The notes under the pieces were generated by a model. The model ran no database searches, was not told where the DNA came from, and saw only the letters and a list, made by a program, of their open reading frames with translations. The translations under genes were made by a program, and so were the position numbers. Positions 26,716-34,202 of a stretch of 38,049 nt of DNA are shown here, in pieces. The stretch's first letter is position 1. Each line of letters opens with the position of its first letter. Where the stretch lies: sequence record NC_028268.1; one strand, written 5' to 3'.

Positions 26716-26916
26716 ATGAGAGAGCGGGGAAGAGCCAAAACTAAAAGAGTTCAGGTTACATTTACACAGGAACAGTGGGAGCTGATAGAAAGATTTAGAG
26801 GCGTTATGGGCAACGATGATGCTGAGATAGTAAGGAACATAGTGCTGTCTTGGCTGGCTGAGAAGTCCGTAGTATCCTACAGGATTAAGGAGAAGGGAGG
26901 AGGTGCTGAGAGTTGA
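26716..26916 (+). CDS. Ribbon-helix-helix (CopG-like) regulator preceding the methyltransferase
   Basis: KTKRVQVTFTQEQWELIERF…DAEIVRNIV RHH pattern; ATG 26716 with GGTGGA RBS; overlaps the MTase start. Confidence 0.75.
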   Translation: MRERGRAKTKRVQVTFTQEQWELIERFRGVMGNDDAEIVRNIVLSWLAEKSVVSYRIKEKGGGAES

Positions 26917-28322
26917 GCCGATACAGCACCATTTCGCTGTTCTCTGGTGCTGGCGGGCTGGATTTAGGGTTTGTGCAGAGCGGCAGGTTTAGGATTGTCT
27001 TCGCCAACGAGATACTTCTACCAGCGGCTGTTACTTATTCCAGAAACCTAGGGCTTAGGCTGGAAGTCTGCGGGGATGAGCCTCGTGTAGAGGCGCAGCC
27101 TGGAACTATCATGGCGTGTGATGTTGCTAAGCTGGATTTCACGGGTTTATCGGGTGTTGATGCCGATGTAATCATTGGAGGCCCGCCGTGTCAGGACTTC
27201 TCTATAGTCAGGGGGCCTGACTGGGACAGGAGGGGCATAAATGTAAAAAGGGGCAGGCTTTATGCGCACTTTGTCAGAGCTCTGGCCTCTCTGCAGCCTA
27301 AGGCGTTTGTCTTTGAGAATGTTCCAGGCCTGGTTAGTGCGAACCGGGGCTTAGCTTATAAGGTGATTCTTGAGGACTTTGCAAGGCTGAGCATTAGGTG
27401 GGATGAAATAAAGAGGATTGTGTCAAGCAATGGGAACGGCGGAAAAGTGGAGGGCTACGAGATAGTCTTTACCGGAATCGTGGATTTCTCAAAACTGGGT
27501 GTTCCCCAGAAGCGTGAGAGGCTTGTAATAATAGGTTTGAGGAAGGACCTGGCCGGAGGAGGCTTTGAGACCATCTCCAGACTTAGGGCGCGCATCGATC
27601 ATGTCCTCAGCGGCAAGAGGTGGCTGCTCCACAGGTATCCGCTGACCCCTATTGAAGTCTTCGAGGGTCAGCCGCTGGACAGACTCGGTGATAAGTATAA
27701 GGAGGTTATGCTGAAGTGGGAGGGAGTCTGGGATGAGGTAGGTACTGAAAGAGCTTTTGAGTGGAAAAGAAGGGTGTGGGACAGGCTTACATTCGATATT
27801 ATAAGTGACTATCTCAGCTTTAACGGTATAAAGCATGCAGACAAGCAGGAGCTGGAGGAGGCGCTGATGCAGCATGAGGTTCTTCTTAAGGAGCTCGGAT
27901 ACTACGGCAGGCCCGTATACAGCCTTAAGCTACCTGATTCCACCACGGAGCCGCCTTATGAAGGTAAAGCGGTTGTGGAGAGAATGAAGAGGATACCGCC
28001 CGACGAGAACCACGAGTTTGTACGCGGCACCCGCTGGGAGGTAGAGGGAAGGGGGATAAGCCTTGTCTACAGAAGGATCCACCCACTCAAACCCTCATAT
28101 ACTGTAGTGGCGTACGGTGGGGGAGGAACCCACGGCTACCATTATGACCGCGACAGGGCGACACTGACTCTGAGGGAGAGAGCTAGGCTCCAAACGTTCC
28201 CTGACAGCTTTCTATTCTACGGGAAAAAGCCTGAGATCAGGGCTCAGATAGGCGAGGCTGTTCCTCCGCTTGCAGCCAAGAGAATAGCTGAAGCGCTAGC
28301 TGAGGTCCTTGATGCTGTTTAG
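26913..28322 (+). CDS. dcm: DNA (cytosine-5)-methyltransferase (probably M.ApeKI, GCWGC)
   Basis: Motif I LFSGAGG, IV GGPPCQDFS, VI FENVPGL, VIII QKRER, IX RERARLQTFPD, X QIGEAVPP. The specificity is from recall and inference only. Confidence 0.95.
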   Translation: MSRYSTISLFSGAGGLDLGFVQSGRFRIVFANEILLPAAVTYSRNLGLRLEVCGDEPRVEAQPGTIMACDVAKLDFTGLSGVDADVIIGGPPCQDFSIVRGPDWDRRGINVKRGRLYAHFVRALASLQPKAFVFENVPGLVSANRGLAYKVILEDFARLSIRWDEIKRIVSSNGNGGKVEGYEIVFTGIVDFSKLGVPQKRERLVIIGLRKDLAGGGFETISRLRARIDHVLSGKRWLLHRYPLTPIEVFEGQPLDRLGDKYKEVMLKWEGVWDEVGTERAFEWKRRVWDRLTFDIISDYLSFNGIKHADKQELEEALMQHEVLLKELGYYGRPVYSLKLPDSTTEPPYEGKAVVERMKRIPPDENHEFVRGTRWEVEGRGISLVYRRIHPLKPSYTVVAYGGGGTHGYHYDRDRATLTLRERARLQTFPDSFLFYGKKPEIRAQIGEAVPPLAAKRIAEALAEVLDAV

Positions 28323-28323
28323 A

Positions 28324-29376
28324 TCAAAGCTGGCTGATTATCCTCTCCCACTCTTCTCTTTTGCGTCTGAGAGCGCCCGAGCTTACCAGGAAATGAAGGG
28401 TCTTAGTGAATTCACCTATACCCTCGAACTCTATCTTTACGTCTCTGCGGCTCGGAATGACGCCGAGTCTCTGCAGGTGCTCGACAACAGTATTTTTGTA
28501 CACGTCTTCTTTAGGATTCCAATAGCCGATAAACTTGTTTATAACGAATTTTTTCCGCTTCATTACTCCTTCAGCTAAGAATATCGCCGTTCGGCGCCCT
28601 ATAGCGGAGCCGTATTCCCTTTTATCGAAAAACCCGGCTATGTAAGCTGGTATTCCCGTGAAGTCTGGTATTAGGTCCCAAATGCTCTCGGCTTCTCCTT
28701 CTGTTATAACGCCCAGCTCCAGGGCTCTGCTAAGCATTTTGTCTCGGATCGCGCTTATCCTCTTCAGGAAGGCTAGAAAGTGCATCCTGGTGACTCCTAC
28801 CCTCACAAGAACGAAGACGTCGCTGTGATCAACTTGCCTGTAGGGCACGTCAAGCCATATGCCTCTAAGCTTTGTCGTTTTTATGCTAACCTTGAGGTTG
28901 GGAGGCCTTCTTACCCCATCTTTTTCTACTTCCTTTATGTCAGATGGGAGAAATTCCTCGAGCGGCCCTTTCCTGTAGTCAAGCATGGCTTTGATGCCGT
29001 ACTCTCTCTCCAGCCATTTTACGAATGCCAGCTCTCCTAGAAACCCCCTGATGGTGTCGGTCCACAGTTGTCCCAGATCTCTCTGCCTCGACATGCCGTA
29101 GTCCGTTCCGGCTAGTCGAGGAGCTAAGTCTAGAGCATGCACGGCGGCCTCTAGGTAGTCATTCTCATCGAGAACTACTGTGCTCCATCTCAGCCAGTCG
29201 ATCCACTCATCTAAACTGGAGAACGCTTCTATATCGCGGCCCCGGAGGGCGCCCTCGCAGAGCGTATCGACATGTCTGGTTCTCCGTTTTATATCCTCAT
29301 ACAGAAGATATTCTCGGGGGAGCTTTCCACTATTTACTGCTCTCACTATGGCGCTTGTGCAGGTTTGCTGGTTCAA
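28324..29376 (-). CDS. Type II restriction endonuclease cognate to the MTase (possibly ApeKI)
   Basis: 350 aa, convergent with the MTase; PD-(D/E)xK-like LPSDIKE…VSIKTTK; GFLGELAF motif. Confidence 0.75.
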   Translation of the reverse strand: MNQQTCTSAIVRAVNSGKLPREYLLYEDIKRRTRHVDTLCEGALRGRDIEAFSSLDEWIDWLRWSTVVLDENDYLEAAVHALDLAPRLAGTDYGMSRQRDLGQLWTDTIRGFLGELAFVKWLEREYGIKAMLDYRKGPLEEFLPSDIKEVEKDGVRRPPNLKVSIKTTKLRGIWLDVPYRQVDHSDVFVLVRVGVTRMHFLAFLKRISAIRDKMLSRALELGVITEGEAESIWDLIPDFTGIPAYIAGFFDKREYGSAIGRRTAIFLAEGVMKRKKFVINKFIGYWNPKEDVYKNTVVEHLQRLGVIPSRRDVKIEFEGIGEFTKTLHFLVSSGALRRKREEWERIISQL

Positions 29377-29460
29377 GCTCCAGCACCTTACAGCCGCCGC
29401 ACATTTTATCCACTTTTAACAGATGTTTTTAACAGGTTTAGGCTTAGCTGGTGTCCAGCT

Positions 29461-30132
29461 GTGCTCTTTCTGGATAAAGGCAGAATCGAGGCTCTCAGGA
29501 GGAGATTGATAGAGTGGTATCGCGTGTACGGGGATAAAGATCTGCCCTGGAGGAACACTGCTGACCCCTGGGCCATTCTGGTTGCGGCGTTCCTGCTTAG
29601 AAAAACTACAGCTAGGCAGGTTGTAAGAGTGTATGAAGAATTCCTCAGGAGGTACCCCAATCCAAAGGCGCTGGCGAGTGCCAGGGAGGATGAGGTTAGA
29701 GAGCTCATCCGCCCGCTGGGCATAGAGCACCAGCGCGCCAAGCACCTGATTGAACTTGCAAAGCATATAGAAGCAAGATATGGCGGTAGGATTCCGTGCT
29801 CGAAGGAGAAGCTGAAGGAGTTGCCGGGGGTAGGGGACTACATAGCCTCAGAAGTCCTCCTAGCAGCCTGCGGCTCCCCCGAGCCGCTCCTGGACAGGAA
29901 CATGATAAGGATCCTAGAGCGAGTGCTTGGTGTGAAATCCGCTAAGAAGAGGCCTCACACAGACCCCAAAATGTGGTCTACGGCCAGGAGGATAGTGCCG
30001 AAAGACCCGGATATGGCGAAGGAGTTCAACTACGGGATGCTGGACCTGGCAAGGAAAATATGCACCGCTAGAAAGCCTCTGTGCACCGAATGCCCGTTAA
30101 ATGATATTTGTATATACTACAACAATGATTAA
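29461..30132 (+). CDS. mig: Thymine-DNA (T/G mismatch) glycosylase, Mig type, HhH-GPD family with a [4Fe-4S] cluster
   Basis: LPWR…DPW…LLRKTT (Mig-like, not the MutY QQT), HhH LPGVGDYIA, catalytic D in LDRN, and C-x6-C-x2-C-x5-C. Probable GTG start at 29461 within track ORF 29272..30132. Confidence 0.9.
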   Translation: MLFLDKGRIEALRRRLIEWYRVYGDKDLPWRNTADPWAILVAAFLLRKTTARQVVRVYEEFLRRYPNPKALASAREDEVRELIRPLGIEHQRAKHLIELAKHIEARYGGRIPCSKEKLKELPGVGDYIASEVLLAACGSPEPLLDRNMIRILERVLGVKSAKKRPHTDPKMWSTARRIVPKDPDMAKEFNYGMLDLARKICTARKPLCTECPLNDICIYYNND

Positions 30133-30178
30133 GCTATATTAGGACTGGCTGACCTCCCATATCGAATGGTGTCGAGAC

Positions 30179-30664
30179 GTGTCGAAAACGCTCGAAAGCC
30201 CTTGGATGCTTTACCGGAGGAAGGGCTCATATGGGCCTGACGTGGAAGTTGTTCTCATGATGCCTATCTCGGTTGCCATCGAGGACAAGCTGTCGCTGGA
30301 GGTAGCCTTAAGAGAGTTCGGGCAAGTCTTAAACTACTATATGACTGGTCCTTATGATGCGGTGTTCATACGCATCAACGATGTTGCCAGCGTGGATGAC
30401 AGGAGACTAGCTATTCTGGAGCGTATGGCCAGTCAGCATGGTATAGGGGTTCTTGTGGGTGGACCTCCTTATTCTGCCTTCACCGAGAGCGATGTTTTGA
30501 AGCTTCCTGCCGTTATCAGCATGAAAGGCAACCCGCTTAGAGTTTACAGGAGGGGGAGGCCGATGAGCCCGGTAATAAGGAGGGCTGGCGATTTCGAGCA
30601 GCTCATCGAATCTGCGTCTAGGTACAGAAGCTTCTTTAGGGCAGAGTCTGCTGTTGGGAGGTGA
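30179..30664 (+). CDS. Small PD-(D/E)xK-family nuclease-like protein
   Basis: GPDVE…AIEDK…FGQVLNY (PD, ExK and QxxxY motifs). Confidence 0.6.
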   Translation: MSKTLESPWMLYRRKGSYGPDVEVVLMMPISVAIEDKLSLEVALREFGQVLNYYMTGPYDAVFIRINDVASVDDRRLAILERMASQHGIGVLVGGPPYSAFTESDVLKLPAVISMKGNPLRVYRRGRPMSPVIRRAGDFEQLIESASRYRSFFRAESAVGR

Positions 30665-32103
30665 TGCTGTTGAGGAGAGGGAGGGAGAGAAGGAGGATAC
30701 CTGAACATGTTGTAACCGACCCCTTTATAGATGTGGCTTTTGTTTATTCTCTGATTAAAGATAGTGAGAGGTTAGATGTCATAAAAAGGCAGGCTCAGGT
30801 GTATGTTGATATAGGTAGTAAAGGTGTAGAGACCGCAACCTTCAAAAAGTACAAAGAGGAGGCCGCCTCTTTTATAATAGAGGCTTTCGGCGCGGTTTAT
30901 AAAAACGTTGATAAGGAGCTTGAGAGGAAGTTCGCAGGATATGATGATAAAACTGTTGCTCAAGTAAAAGCTGAGAGGGCTTGGACCAGCCTTATAGCGT
31001 TGCTTGCCTCAGCTATGCTTATGAAAAGAGCAGGAGTGGGAATTGGCTACTTTATCCCCTCGCAGTATGCTGATATTTCGAGGCTGGAGCCTATATTAAA
31101 AGTTCTAATTTATGAAAAAGCACGCTCGCGGGGAAGAGCTGCATCCCGGGTTCTTGAAGCTGCACTGAAGGATCTTGGGGTCGATAGAAAATTAGAGGAG
31201 CTGGCCGAGATAGCGCCCACCCTCTGGTGGGTTAATCTGATAATGGAAAGCGAGATTATTGAGGGCCTGCTGAAGTTCCACTATCTAACATACGTTTTTA
31301 GAGATAGGATAAACGCGTTCGTCGCTGAGGTAGAAGATACTCTCTCAACTATTGAAGAGCACCAGGCTGATTATGATTACGGAGAAATCGAAGTGCTTAA
31401 GGGACTGCTCAGCAGATGTGTAGAGCTGAGGGGCCAATACATCAATAAGTTGCAAAATGCTCTCCTCTTCATTAAAAGCCTGAGGCCCAGCGTGTTAAAA
31501 ATAGCAAAGCCCGAGCAGTGGGAATGGTTCATCAAGGATGAAACATTGACATATGCAACTATGGTATATCTTGCAGAAACCCAAAGGCTCAGCGGAGCAG
31601 GCAGGATATCCCTCAGCATAACGCGCTTGCTAGAGCCGAAGAAAGGAGTTTATGCAGGAGTAGCTTCTGCCCTCGCAAGTCTGCTTGCTCTCTCACCCGT
31701 GTTTATGCAGTACAATATAGAGGCGCGGGGAAAAGCCGTCATAACGCCAGCGGATATAGTTGTAGCTGTGCTGAGGCTCATCGGCAGGCACGGCAGGGCA
31801 AGAGACTTCACAGTCGGTGTGGAGGATGCAGTAGCAGAGATTATTCAGTTTTGGAGAGAAGCGGATATTCTGCGCAGGGTTAGCATCTATGCCGAAGAAG
31901 ATGCTACGCAGGACATGCAACACATCCTCGACTCGTTTAATGCATCTATGGCTCTGCTCCTCAGCACTGGCATAGACGGCGTTCACCCAGTTACGTCGAA
32001 GAGGGTGTTGCTTAAGCTTCCCCCTAGAATGATTGCCTATGACTCCCTCTTTGTACGTCCTAATGCGTTTTTTGAAATGGTTAGAAAGGTTTGGGGTGGA
32101 TAG
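30661..32103 (+). CDS. Hypothetical helical protein (480 aa), middle gene of a three-gene operon
   Basis: Long ORF overlapping both neighbours; no motif recognised. Confidence 0.8.
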   Translation: MMLLRRGRERRRIPEHVVTDPFIDVAFVYSLIKDSERLDVIKRQAQVYVDIGSKGVETATFKKYKEEAASFIIEAFGAVYKNVDKELERKFAGYDDKTVAQVKAERAWTSLIALLASAMLMKRAGVGIGYFIPSQYADISRLEPILKVLIYEKARSRGRAASRVLEAALKDLGVDRKLEELAEIAPTLWWVNLIMESEIIEGLLKFHYLTYVFRDRINAFVAEVEDTLSTIEEHQADYDYGEIEVLKGLLSRCVELRGQYINKLQNALLFIKSLRPSVLKIAKPEQWEWFIKDETLTYATMVYLAETQRLSGAGRISLSITRLLEPKKGVYAGVASALASLLALSPVFMQYNIEARGKAVITPADIVVAVLRLIGRHGRARDFTVGVEDAVAEIIQFWREADILRRVSIYAEEDATQDMQHILDSFNASMALLLSTGIDGVHPVTSKRVLLKLPPRMIAYDSLFVRPNAFFEMVRKVWGG

Positions 32104-33710
32104 GCGTGGAGAGAGAGGTGTGTGTTAATCAGCTACTTAAATTTTTGGACAGCATAAGGGGAAGACTGTCTTTTAGAATGGTTGAGCGTCTTTTTTCGCG
32201 CGGGCTGGATGAGAACCCTATATTTGAGGCCATAAGCAAGTCGGGGGCTTTGGCCAAAAACGTGATTATAATATTGGGCGGAAGGGGATGCGGCAAGACG
32301 CTAGTCATGAGATACATAAAGCACTACTTCGAGCCTGAGGGCTGGGATTACAAGTACTTCAGCGGAGATCAGTTTAAAGAGGCTGATGCCCAAGAGCTTA
32401 TGAAGATAATATCGGAAACAAGGGATTTGCTCGAGAACAGCGAGGATTATAAGGTGATTGTCGGCATTGATGATGTTGTGGAGGCAAGCGAAGCTATAAG
32501 AGATACAATTAAAAACCAGCTGGTGCCTTTGGTTGTGGATTATGCAGGGAGAATTAAACTCGTCATCTCAGGACAGAGCGAGCGCGTTGTTGGGACAACA
32601 ACAGTGCTCCATATATTAGAAGACACTTTGGGACGCAGTCCGAAGGCTGAAATGCTCTTCGGGGAGTACCCTGGAGAAGTACTGCGCAAGCAATTTAGAG
32701 AGAGCTACGTGAGAAAAGATCCTATAAAGCTCTTCAGAGGAGCCGCTATGATAAATCTCGATGCGTACTGGTCTAGATTCCGCTCTCTAGATATGGCTGA
32801 AGAGCTAGCTGATGTTATAGTAAGGCTGGCTGAATTTTACAAGTACAACAGCGGTGTAGGGGAGTGTGGGGAGGTCTCTGAAGAGTTATTAAAGTACAAG
32901 CGCGGGCTTGCCTTGATAGCCCTGGCAAGCCTGCCTAAAACTCTTTATCCGTACGACAAGATAGTAATAGAATATATAAGCCCGGAGCCGGATACGCCTT
33001 CCCCCGCTCTGAACGGTCTGGGCATCTCTGACCTTATCTACAAATTCATATCTGGGGAGCTGAGAGGGCTGAGTGAGGTGGCAGAGAGGCTTTACAGCCG
33101 CTTATCACAGCAACGAGTTGCAGCTGATGTCGATGATATAAAAGAGGCTATAATGGAGTCGGCCAGCGAGCTGACCTACGCCAGCGTTGTAAGAGGTGCT
33201 CTGCCTGAGGCTTTAGGGATAGAAGTGCCTGAGGCCGAGCAGGGCAGAAAGCGCAAGCCCCTTAGACCGCGCTTAGACTTCATATATATTGACAGGGAGG
33301 TAGGCGGGCAACCTTCACGTGTTAACATAATCATACATGTACTTAAGCCCGATGCTAAAGGCTATGTTGTGTCCAGCTCGCTGTATAAGCTCGCGAGACT
33401 CGTCGAGCTGAATATACCCAGCGAGGCTGAAGGGAACTATTTAGCGGTCATAGTCCCGTCGAGGGCTCATATGAGGGCGGTGTATAGATATGCAGAGATA
33501 AAGCGGATAGGCCGGGATATTCTAGTGGTGCTGGCTGACAGCTTGGGTGAACTAGACAATAGTGTTGTTAAAACATTAGCCGATAAAAATGCTTCAGAAG
33601 AGGAGCTTAGACTGCTTCGGCATATATTCTTGGGAACTGTGCTCTTCAATCTAAGGGATGACAAGAACGTTCCTCAGCTCATATACTACCTCGCACCGAC
33701 AGTTTTTTAG
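32091..33710 (+). CDS. P-loop NTPase domain protein (539 aa)
   Basis: Walker A IIILGGRGCGKT and Walker B VIVGIDD in the N-terminal third; large C-terminal region unrecognised. Confidence 0.8.
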   Translation: MGWIGVEREVCVNQLLKFLDSIRGRLSFRMVERLFSRGLDENPIFEAISKSGALAKNVIIILGGRGCGKTLVMRYIKHYFEPEGWDYKYFSGDQFKEADAQELMKIISETRDLLENSEDYKVIVGIDDVVEASEAIRDTIKNQLVPLVVDYAGRIKLVISGQSERVVGTTTVLHILEDTLGRSPKAEMLFGEYPGEVLRKQFRESYVRKDPIKLFRGAAMINLDAYWSRFRSLDMAEELADVIVRLAEFYKYNSGVGECGEVSEELLKYKRGLALIALASLPKTLYPYDKIVIEYISPEPDTPSPALNGLGISDLIYKFISGELRGLSEVAERLYSRLSQQRVAADVDDIKEAIMESASELTYASVVRGALPEALGIEVPEAEQGRKRKPLRPRLDFIYIDREVGGQPSRVNIIIHVLKPDAKGYVVSSSLYKLARLVELNIPSEAEGNYLAVIVPSRAHMRAVYRYAEIKRIGRDILVVLADSLGELDNSVVKTLADKNASEEELRLLRHIFLGTVLFNLRDDKNVPQLIYYLAPTVF

Positions 33711-34100: not shown

Positions 34101-34202
34101 TAGAGCATACCGTCTATACTCTATCACCTATACTCTAGAGTGGTAAGCTTTATTAGGTTCCGTTATCATTCTATACTCTAGAACCTAGAGTATAGGTGAT
34201 AG
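34101..34202. promoter_or_regulatory. Divergent control region: perfect 18-bp inverted repeat (34121-34138 / 34185-34202) and multiple CTATACTCTA boxes
   Basis: CTATCACCTATACTCTAG versus CTAGAGTATAGGTGATAG; CTATACTCTAG-AAC-CTAGAGTATAG at 34171-34195; further boxes at 34114 and 34101 (degenerate). Confidence 0.75.

Follow-up and report, generated by a model that had tools for sequence, protein, structure and literature searches.

DISARM systems consist of the superfamily 2 (SF2) helicase DrmA, the DUF1998 protein DrmB, a methyltransferase and, optionally, the phospholipase D (PLD)-type nuclease DrmC. Archaeal immunity beyond CRISPR and classical restriction-modification (R-M), especially that of crenarchaea, is poorly charted, and the catalogues of defence systems derive mostly from bacterial ones. 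Here we compare with DISARM and other described systems three genes, orf41, orf42 and orf43 (genes 1, 2 and 3, together the trio), of APSV1, a provirus of Aeropyrum pernix whose complete genome (NC_028268.1; 38,049 nucleotides) was analysed over its full length and is called the window below. The trio represents a newly recognised, rare family of thermophilic archaea, with a predicted new fold in gene 2 and an unusually strict linkage to R-M modules. The initial annotation of this locus, made from the sequence by itself, had proposed that the trio is a defence system of its own belonging to no named family.

Comparison with described systems

Searches with the trio against PADLOC-DB v2.0.0, Pfam, PHROGs, NCBIfam and PDB sequences returned no named defence family, in agreement with the latter part of that proposal. 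Genes 1 and 2 matched nothing, and gene 3 gave only sub-threshold matches to its P-loop. PADLOC also returned no named system for the homologues in two related loci, L095 and L084 (related loci carry L numbers throughout), and the accessible literature contains no description of the trio.

The trio resembles DISARM in that it is part of a multi-gene module built on a C5 cytosine methyltransferase and combining an NTPase with a candidate nuclease, and in that the methyl mark is proposed to separate self from non-self. DrmA- and DrmC-like genes also fill the slot of the trio in L083 and flank the ApeKI-like R-M block in L002 and L009. However, the trio itself matches no Drm model and has no SF2 helicase, DUF1998 or PLD domain, and its R-M partner is a full type II system of the classical kind that includes a restriction endonuclease (REase). 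The trio does not belong to DISARM; generic DrmMII matches came only from the neighbouring C5 methyltransferase.

A likeness to type I HsdR and Cas3 is confined to a variant found in L084 and L100, where an N-terminal PD-(D/E)xK domain is joined to an SF2 helicase, the build of a recruited translocase-nuclease effector. In contrast, APSV1 has a 161-aa gene 1 without a helicase, and neither HsdM, HsdS nor CRISPR components. With Septu PtuAB, Gabija, PARIS and STAND-Mrr, the trio shares the pairing of a P-loop ATPase with a nuclease, here a candidate one. PtuA, AriA and PDC-S01 gave weak matches at the level of the P-loop, and nSTAND1-Mrr_cat fusions occur among the neighbours of gene 3 in the ESM Atlas. 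For the APSV1 protein these matches are, however, limited to the Walker region at E 1e-3 or weaker, the ATPase is not of the ABC/SMC type, and the obligatory 470-aa helical and winged-helix subunit and the R-M linkage of the trio have no counterpart in Septu, Gabija or PARIS.

The predicted winged helix of gene 2 (~330-480) resembles those of ORC1, Cdc6, the Sir3 C-terminus, TubR, JetB, the Scc1 C-terminus and BrxA (Z 5-6.9), which brings to mind ORC1/Cdc6 and the kleisin/KITE proteins. These scores lie in the range of a common arrangement, though, and gene 2 has no AAA+ module, no SMC partner and an N-terminal region of 300 residues without any match. A Wadjet or SMC-kleisin complex was rejected: gene 3 (534 aa) has no SMC or ABC profile match, and only the gene 2 winged helix is like the winged-helix domains (WHDs) of JetB and kleisin (Z 4.6-5.8). 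ParA-type partition was rejected as well, as the Walker A motif of gene 3, GGRGCGKT, is not the deviant KGGxGK[ST] and no ParA, CbiA or AAA_31 match was found. Overall, the trio most resembles multi-gene methylation-linked systems (DISARM and the recruitment of HsdR in type I systems) and ATPase/nuclease pairs, and falls within none of them.

A translationally coupled operon

Each of the three genes is deposited as a "hypothetical protein" (orf41-152, orf42-479 and orf43-534). Their coordinates and predicted products are as follows.

30179..30664, plus strand: gene 1 (orf41), 161 aa from the GTG at 30179, annotated as 152 aa from the ATG at 30206; small alpha/beta protein with GPD21...E35-x-K37...Q49-xxx-Y53, candidate PD-(D/E)xK nuclease (RecB-type motif set)
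30661..32103, plus strand: gene 2 (orf42), 479/480 aa; predicted all-alpha N-terminal domain and C-terminal winged-helix domain
32091..33710, plus strand: gene 3 (orf43), 534 aa from the GTG at 32106; AAA+/STAND-like P-loop NTPase

The trio is a real, co-directional and translationally coupled three-gene operon. At the junction TGATG, the stop codon of gene 1 (TGA, 30662-30664) overlaps the gene 2 ATG at 30664. Gene 2 stops at TAG (32101-32103), followed after a 2-nt gap by the annotated gene 3 GTG at 32106. The preceding Mig-like gene stops at 30132, 46 nt before the gene 1 GTG. The junctions and the short gap bear out the earlier description of three overlapping, co-directional genes just 3' of an R-M/Mig module. 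All three genes are conserved at full length across at least 13 dereplicated lineages, which indicates that they are real genes rather than chance open reading frames (ORFs). Papers that mention APSV1 say nothing on orf41-43; the sole APSV1 ATPase discussed there is ORF290 (PMC4124505).

Linkage of the trio to restriction-modification modules

The R-M/Mig block next to the trio contains the following features.

26716..30132, mixed strands: partner R-M/Mig block, read from Pfam and PADLOC matches and conserved beside the trio in relatives
orf37, 66 aa: first gene of the block
26913-28322, plus strand: M.ApeKI C5-methyltransferase (PADLOC singleton, end to end, 1119 bits)
28324-29376, minus strand: ApeKI-type REase (PADLOC singleton, end to end, 830 bits)
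29461-30132, plus strand: HhH-GPD/Fe-S Mig-like glycosylase (Pfam/PADLOC)

The published cloning primers for M.ApeKI encode the first eight and the last six residues of the ORF in the window (PMC8557920). The primer DNA has no match in the window and the protein ends agree, indicating that the published M.ApeKI gene was recoded. Together, the PADLOC singleton matches and the primer-encoded residues identify the block as the ApeKI system, which recognises GCWGC, together with a T/G glycosylase of the Mig type. APSV1 shows no depletion of GCWGC sites (105 observed, 122±9 expected), as would be expected of a self-methylating element.

Homologues of genes 2 and 3 (35-50% identity) came from hot-environment metagenomes and metagenome-assembled genomes (MAGs). 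Their named sources are another A. pernix strain, Infirmifilum, Methanomethylicaceae, "Nitrososphaerota", Sulfolobales archaeon Acd1, Zestosphaera tikiterensis and a Thermoplasmata MAG. The operon is kept as a unit at 31-50% identity, and the recurrence in other archaeal loci that the initial annotation had looked for in a defence system is thus present. In all of the roughly ten independent trio-seeded lineages with enough flanking DNA (L002, L004, L007, L009, L010, L012, L013, L014, L096 and L095), a methyltransferase module lies within 3.5 kb of the trio, and none of these lineages has the trio apart from a type II R-M module.

Nine of these lineages carry a block like that of APSV1, composed of a small gene, a C5-methyltransferase, an REase and an HhH-GPD gene (C-M-R-Mig), in three gene orders. 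The order M-R-Mig followed by the trio is found in APSV1, L004, L007, L012 and L096. In L002, L010 and L014 the block is inverted (Mig-R-M) and the trio diverges from the methylase side, and in L009 the trio lies upstream of the block (123-M-R-Mig). In the remaining lineage, L095, a complete trio is divergent from a non-homologous N6/N4 methyltransferase accompanied by a 429-aa gene, with no glycosylase. Since the trio of L095 stands beside an unrelated methyltransferase and without Mig, the linkage appears to be to R-M and not to the repair of 5-methylcytosine (m5C) damage.

An REase-seeded metagenome scan (80 loci) added 21 loci with trio genes, as a rule at a distance of 87-500 bp from the block. 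Trio-positive loci fall in nearly all clades of a quick REase tree that carries support by the Shimodaira-Hasegawa-like approximate likelihood ratio test (SH-aLRT) only. The pairwise identities of genes 2 and 3 are correlated with those of R and M (Mantel r 0.54-0.65, p<=0.0005; 13 dereplicated lineages). As the trio was never seen alone and the R-M block was seen without the trio, the block appears to be autonomous and the trio an optional partner.

At the REase position of the Zestosphaera tikiterensis locus lies a gene (L013:4313-5308) that shares only 24% identity with ApeKI-type REases and forms a very long branch. M and Mig of this locus are 64-68% identical, and a 3.4-kb insert separates Mig from the trio. 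The REase may have been replaced here. Elsewhere (L030:11344-15798), an ApeKI-like block without a trio has, at a distance of 3.4 kb, a gene for a 1484-aa nSTAND5 + TPR protein of Avs-like build, a further sign that ApeKI-like cassettes sit in defence islands.

Gene 2 combines a predicted new fold with a winged helix

An AlphaFold2 model of gene 2, built from 21 homologues, had a predicted local distance difference test score (pLDDT) of 87 and a predicted template modelling score (pTM) of 0.89. In the model, residues ~15-330 are all-alpha and residues ~330-480 form a winged helix. The N-terminal part (~15-330) had no fold match in the PDB by Foldseek or in the ESM Atlas, where a shape search with the model reached a template modelling (TM) score of 0.33 at best. 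The ESM Atlas model of one gene 2 homologue is of low quality (pLDDT 0.39), with neighbours that carry no meaning, and the Atlas has none for a gene 3 homologue. The confident model predicts that gene 2 is a new all-alpha fold with a C-terminal winged helix.

For residues 328-480, the VIA-wide comparison gave Z 5-6.9 against the WHDs of ORC1/Cdc6, the Sir3 C-terminus, TubR, JetB/kleisin and BrxA. These modest scores suggest that the modelled winged helix may bind DNA or the ATPase. The earlier view of gene 2 as a helical protein resembling nothing thus holds for the N-terminal domain and gives way, for the C-terminal domain, to a predicted winged helix. A tyrosine recombinase and a DDE transposase were considered for gene 2 and rejected, as no such fold was matched.

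Sequence searches with gene 2, both single-sequence and profile, found no match in Pfam, PADLOC, PHROGs, NCBIfam or the PDB. Its signature motifs are ELRGQYINKLQNA (255-267) and TPAD (362-365). The gene 2 family is very small: among 1.84 billion cluster representatives, the profile matched 16 clusters only, all from hot-environment archaea. On a virus-like contig (L099:385-4409), the likeness of a 369-aa protein to gene 2 is confined to the C-terminal half of gene 2; its neighbours are genes for a DpdA-like tRNA-guanine transglycosylase and for the queuosine-precursor transporter Vut_1. This hints that the C-terminal domain of gene 2 also accompanies 7-deazaguanine DNA-modification genes.

Gene 3 is a P-loop NTPase with conserved Walker motifs

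The Walker A motif of gene 3 (GGRGCGKT, 63-70) and its Walker B motif ((V/A)xIDD, 124-128, with IDD at 126-128) are invariant in 26 homologues, in agreement with the Walker motifs first noted in this gene. They conform to the GxxxxGK[ST] and hhhhD[DE] patterns of AAA+/STAND proteins, which gene 3 resembles. Its match to AAA_14 reached 26.8 bits against a cutoff of 27.0, and weaker sub-threshold matches to ORC-CDC6-like, nSTAND3/5, ATPase_2 and AAA_16 covered the P-loop region only. AAA_14 and ORC-CDC6-like were matched weakly by all 26 members. A profile search of the PDB likewise matched the P-loop alone, and in PADLOC gene 3 had only P-loop matches, to PDC-S01, PtuA and PDC-M49A (E 7e-4 to 4e-2). 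By language-model features in the Atlas, its neighbours were archaeal AAA ATPases and STAND ATPases fused to Mrr or Hjc nucleases, which we take as a lead only.

The P-loop NTPase domain (~55-200) is followed by a conserved helical region with the motif NLDAYWS (222-228), a variable linker and a C-terminal alpha/beta domain (~393-539). At residues ~385-425 (33240-33360 in the window), the C-terminal domain starts with R-K-x-x-G-P-R-x-D-x-I, followed by h-h-h-x-x-L-K/R-x-D. This start loosely resembles RKGSYGPDVEVV ... ExK of gene 1, with acidic and lysine positions that are not invariant, and an hhalign comparison of gene 3 with gene 1 was insignificant (13-column match, probability 0.9%). Going by these residues, the C-terminal domain may be an inactivated REase-like domain.

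Gene 1 is a candidate nuclease

Gene 1 homologues (28-35% identity) were taken from loci located via genes 2 and 3. In the alignment of eight sequences, only 28-35% identical, E35, K37, Q49 and Y53 are invariant, as are Y59-D60, G90, G94 and Y98, and GPD21 is kept in every homologue that is not N-terminally truncated. The PD...ExK...QxxxY motifs pointed out in the initial annotation are therefore conserved features of the family. The copy in L095, 31% identical, retains all of them (hhalign probability 99.5). The AlphaFold2 model (pLDDT 80.9, pTM 0.78) has the core b-b-b-a-b-a-b, with D21 ahead of strand 2 (22-26), E35-x-K37 at the end of strand 3 (32-37) and QxxxY in the next helix. This placement of D, ExK and QxxxY is the layout of RecB-type PD-(D/E)xK nucleases. 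In both alignment and model, gene 1 has the conserved D...(D/E)xK motif, catalytic in PD-(D/E)xK nucleases, at the second and third core strands.

The weak fold matches of gene 1 were recurrently restriction-endonuclease-like (PaqCI, EcoT38I, SfsA, NucS, the Can2 nuclease domain, AF1548, XPF/Hef, FANCM/FAAP24, ERCC1, XisH and, in BFVD, MmcB-like, Mrr and T7 endonuclease I-like proteins). Single-sequence and profile searches of the PDB with gene 1, and a Pfam search with five more homologues, gave nothing relevant. On the strength of the motifs and the model, we believe that gene 1 is plausibly, and rather probably, a nuclease.

Variant architectures point to an exchangeable nuclease

In L084, L087 and L100, the R-M block is followed by full-length, though distant, homologues of gene 2 (25% identity, E 2e-15) and gene 3 (22%, E 1e-19). 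Next in the same overlapping operon, and with no gene 1, comes a gene for a 1265-1268 aa protein with weak PDDEXK_1 and with DEAD/ResIII and Helicase_C matches, whose best PADLOC matches are SngC, DpdJ, BrxH and Cas3. The replacement of gene 1 by a nuclease-helicase in these loci points to a DNA-degrading effector that would be recruited by a core of genes 2 and 3. From these gene contents, genes 2 and 3 appear to form the conserved core, with the nuclease being exchangeable. The variant is a four-gene one in L084:9922-14843 and L100:3119-8991, where the gene 2-like, gene 3-like and HsdR/Cas3-like nuclease-helicase (1265-1268 aa) genes are accompanied by one for a family-less 690-aa protein.

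The R-M/Mig block of L083, including its REase, is near-identical to that of L084, its sister locus, and the slot of the trio holds a DpdJ/DrmA-like helicase and a DpdK/DrmC-like PLD nuclease. The slot genes (L083:4300-11495) encode the PLD nuclease, an 839-aa protein of unknown type, the helicase (952 aa) and a further unknown protein of 371 aa. Judged by its genes, this is a putative DISARM/Dpd-like module attached to an ApeKI-type C5 methylase. In L002, the DrmA-like helicase (E 6e-35) lies on the other side of the block, and the gene beside the block in L009 is a DrmC-like PLD gene. The Drm/Dpd-like genes of these three loci indicate that the neighbourhood of the trio is of a defence type.

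The trio as provirus cargo

A low-GC island of 9.6 kb (24.6-34.2 kb; 39-54% GC compared with 60-67% on both sides) holds orf35/36, the ApeKI R-M/Mig block and the trio, and looks like one or two horizontally acquired cargo blocks. None of the other 50,697 phage records or of the 72,556 plasmids searched contains the trio; APSV1 alone was matched. A scan of IMG/VR with the gene 2 profile found no relative, and the trio fell in no PHROGs family. The low-GC island, the absence from other viruses and plasmids and the lack of a PHROG together indicate that the trio is cargo and not part of the fusellovirus core.

A proposed nuclease complex coupled to R-M

Because the trio was never found away from R-M and R-M was found without the trio, we read the trio as an accessory module coupled to R-M, which is a better reading than a free-standing system. 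The initial proposal of a defence system thus stands in so far as the trio is an unnamed, recurrent and compositionally foreign cargo of the provirus, and does not stand as to a free-standing system, since the trio is always beside type II R-M.

More specifically, the trio may be an ATP-driven nuclease complex that is coupled to the adjacent type II R-M system and adds a second restriction-like layer for the lysogen; from the sequence evidence we regard this as the best-supported reading and as about as likely as not. The trio would be a horizontally acquired accessory operon travelling with type II R-M cassettes on mobile elements of hyperthermophilic archaea. Gene 3 would be an AAA+/STAND-like ATPase serving as a switch or motor, gene 2 a scaffold or a DNA-binding subunit acting through its winged helix, the two together a loader or sensor, and gene 1 a small effector nuclease of the PD-(D/E)xK type. 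Most likely by the same logic as in DISARM and type I systems, DNA bearing the methyl mark of the cassette would be spared. Foreign DNA that is unmarked or has been cut by R-M would be captured by genes 2 and 3 in complex and then broken down by the nuclease. In this way, the trio and R-M would together act against incoming viruses and plasmids and give the lysogen superinfection immunity. Here we infer complex formation, nuclease and ATPase activity, methylation dependence and an antiviral role. A complex prediction for gene 2 (15-480) with gene 3 (20-539) gave ipSAE values of 0.00, 0.35 and 0.00, which count neither way.

Several results weigh against this proposal. Gene 1 matched no nuclease profile in Pfam, NCBIfam, PADLOC or PHROGs. 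Its fold matches (PaqCI as the best by Foldseek, E 0.02, prob 0.97; VIA Z at most 5.9) were all below reliable thresholds, so that of its earlier assignment as a PD-(D/E)xK nuclease the invariant motifs and a compatible topology hold up and the fold support is weak. An hhalign comparison of gene 1 with the N-terminal nuclease region of the L084 helicase found no relation. About two thirds of gene 3, the remaining ~340 residues beyond the P-loop region, have no sequence match, just as the C-terminus of the NTPase had at first been said to resemble nothing. In L095, the 429-aa ORF that would have to be the restriction enzyme had no match in any search. Five loci in three lineages of the REase-seeded scan have the R-M block without the trio despite at least 1.2 kb of flank on both sides. 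The linkage to a neighbouring methyltransferase is a raw count with no background rate beside it, and simple co-transfer in one mobile cassette or defence island can also yield both the linkage and the co-divergence.

An extension of the proposal, which we put forward only tentatively and consider possible but doubtful, is that the trio stands for a class of R-M-dependent immune effectors in which a gene 2/gene 3 loader reads the DNA status set by whatever type II R-M system accompanies it and delivers an exchangeable nuclease, either the small PD-(D/E)xK protein or, in the variant, an HsdR-like helicase-nuclease. If true, this would be a modular 'restriction amplifier' specific to the mobile elements of hyperthermophilic archaea, found in the provirus of ApeKI itself, a commercial enzyme.

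Alternative explanations

The trio could instead be an independent defence system that merely shares a defence island or mobile cassette with R-M, is not functionally coupled to it and responds to a trigger of its own; gene 3 might, for instance, be a STAND-like sensor ATPase that switches the nuclease on in abortive infection. The nSTAND3/5 and AAA_14 matches of gene 3 and its Atlas neighbours, STAND ATPases fused to Mrr or Hjc, would fit such a system, as would other defence genes nearby (DrmA/DrmC-like, MmeI-like and the nSTAND5+TPR giant) and the existence of R-M blocks without the trio. We nevertheless consider it unlikely, as the trio is always beside R-M in the trio-seeded lineages at a gap of typically 87-500 bp, and the linkage survives three rearrangements and a non-homologous methyltransferase and is accompanied by co-divergence with R-M.

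The constant presence of an R-M neighbour, whatever its type, together with the ATPase and nuclease composition, also recalls the PrrC- or RloC-like guards of R-M, a concept established for PrrC-EcoprrI. Such a guard would be inactive while R-M is intact and fire, by cell killing or DNA degradation, when a virus inhibits restriction. We find this improbable: the trio is not homologous to PrrC or RloC and lacks the features of an anticodon nuclease, Aeropyrum viruses have no known anti-restriction proteins, and the HsdR-like variant better fits a direct attack on DNA.

About as improbable, in our view, is a module for the maintenance or mobility of the R-M cassette or of the provirus, acting in post-segregational stabilisation, in partition through a winged-helix centromere binder and an NTPase, as an ORC/Cdc6-like replication initiator, or as a TnsA/TnsC-type Tn7-like helper. 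The likeness of the gene 2 winged helix to the ORC1/Cdc6 WHD and TubR, the weak ORC-CDC6-like and IstB matches of gene 3, and the occurrence of the cassette in different mobile elements and gene orders speak for it. It is weakened by the lack of a recombinase or DDE fold in gene 2, by a Walker A that is not of the deviant ParA type, by the absence of flanking repeats that would bound the cassette and by the spread of R-M blocks without the trio; defence is favoured by the Cas3/HsdR-like helicase-nuclease variant and by the DISARM-like genes that take the slot of the trio in L083.

A DNA-repair accessory of R-M/Mig, dealing with T:G or abasic intermediates of m5C deamination at 90 °C or with self-inflicted restriction breaks, would explain why the trio of APSV1 and most relatives follows the Mig-like glycosylase gene directly and in the same direction and why XPF/Hef/NucS repair nucleases are among the weak fold matches of gene 1, but we hold it to be very improbable given the N6/N4 methyltransferase next to the trio of L095, where both m5C and a glycosylase are missing, the trios on the far side from Mig in L002, L017, L058 and L062, and the C-M-R-Mig blocks that manage without a trio.

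Significance of the R-M-linked trio

The operon is an unannotated, conserved one with a predicted new protein fold that is tied to R-M cassettes in Aeropyrum, Zestosphaera, Sulfolobales, Infirmifilum, Methanomethylicaceae and a Thermoplasmata MAG. If its coupling to R-M is true, the trio would be an archaeal equivalent of the multi-gene systems based on methylation (DISARM, BREX and MADS), and would explain how a temperate fusellovirus protects its lysogen. Since the trio occurs in a cultivated model organism beside the purified and characterised ApeKI and M.ApeKI, a contribution of the accessory genes to type II R-M is directly testable in vitro at high temperature.

Candidate expression signals and flanking sequences

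Sequence features around the trio that may serve its expression are the following.

30135..30141, plus strand: TATATTA, TATA-box-like archaeal element 38 nt 5' of the gene 1 start, by sequence reading
30168-30171, plus strand: GGTG, candidate Shine-Dalgarno (SD) sequence for gene 1, by sequence reading
33703..33708, plus strand: T6 run overlapping the gene 3 stop codon, candidate archaeal oligo-T terminator

The trio may thus have its own promoter and SD sequence upstream of gene 1, and the T6 run at the end of gene 3 may be an oligo-T terminator. No flanking repeats were found at the boundaries of the R-M/trio cassette. The next gene after the trio, orf44, is convergent. Just beyond the operon, the intergenic region 34113-34202 contains a perfect 18-nt inverted repeat (34121-34138 / 34185-34202) with overlapping direct repeats.

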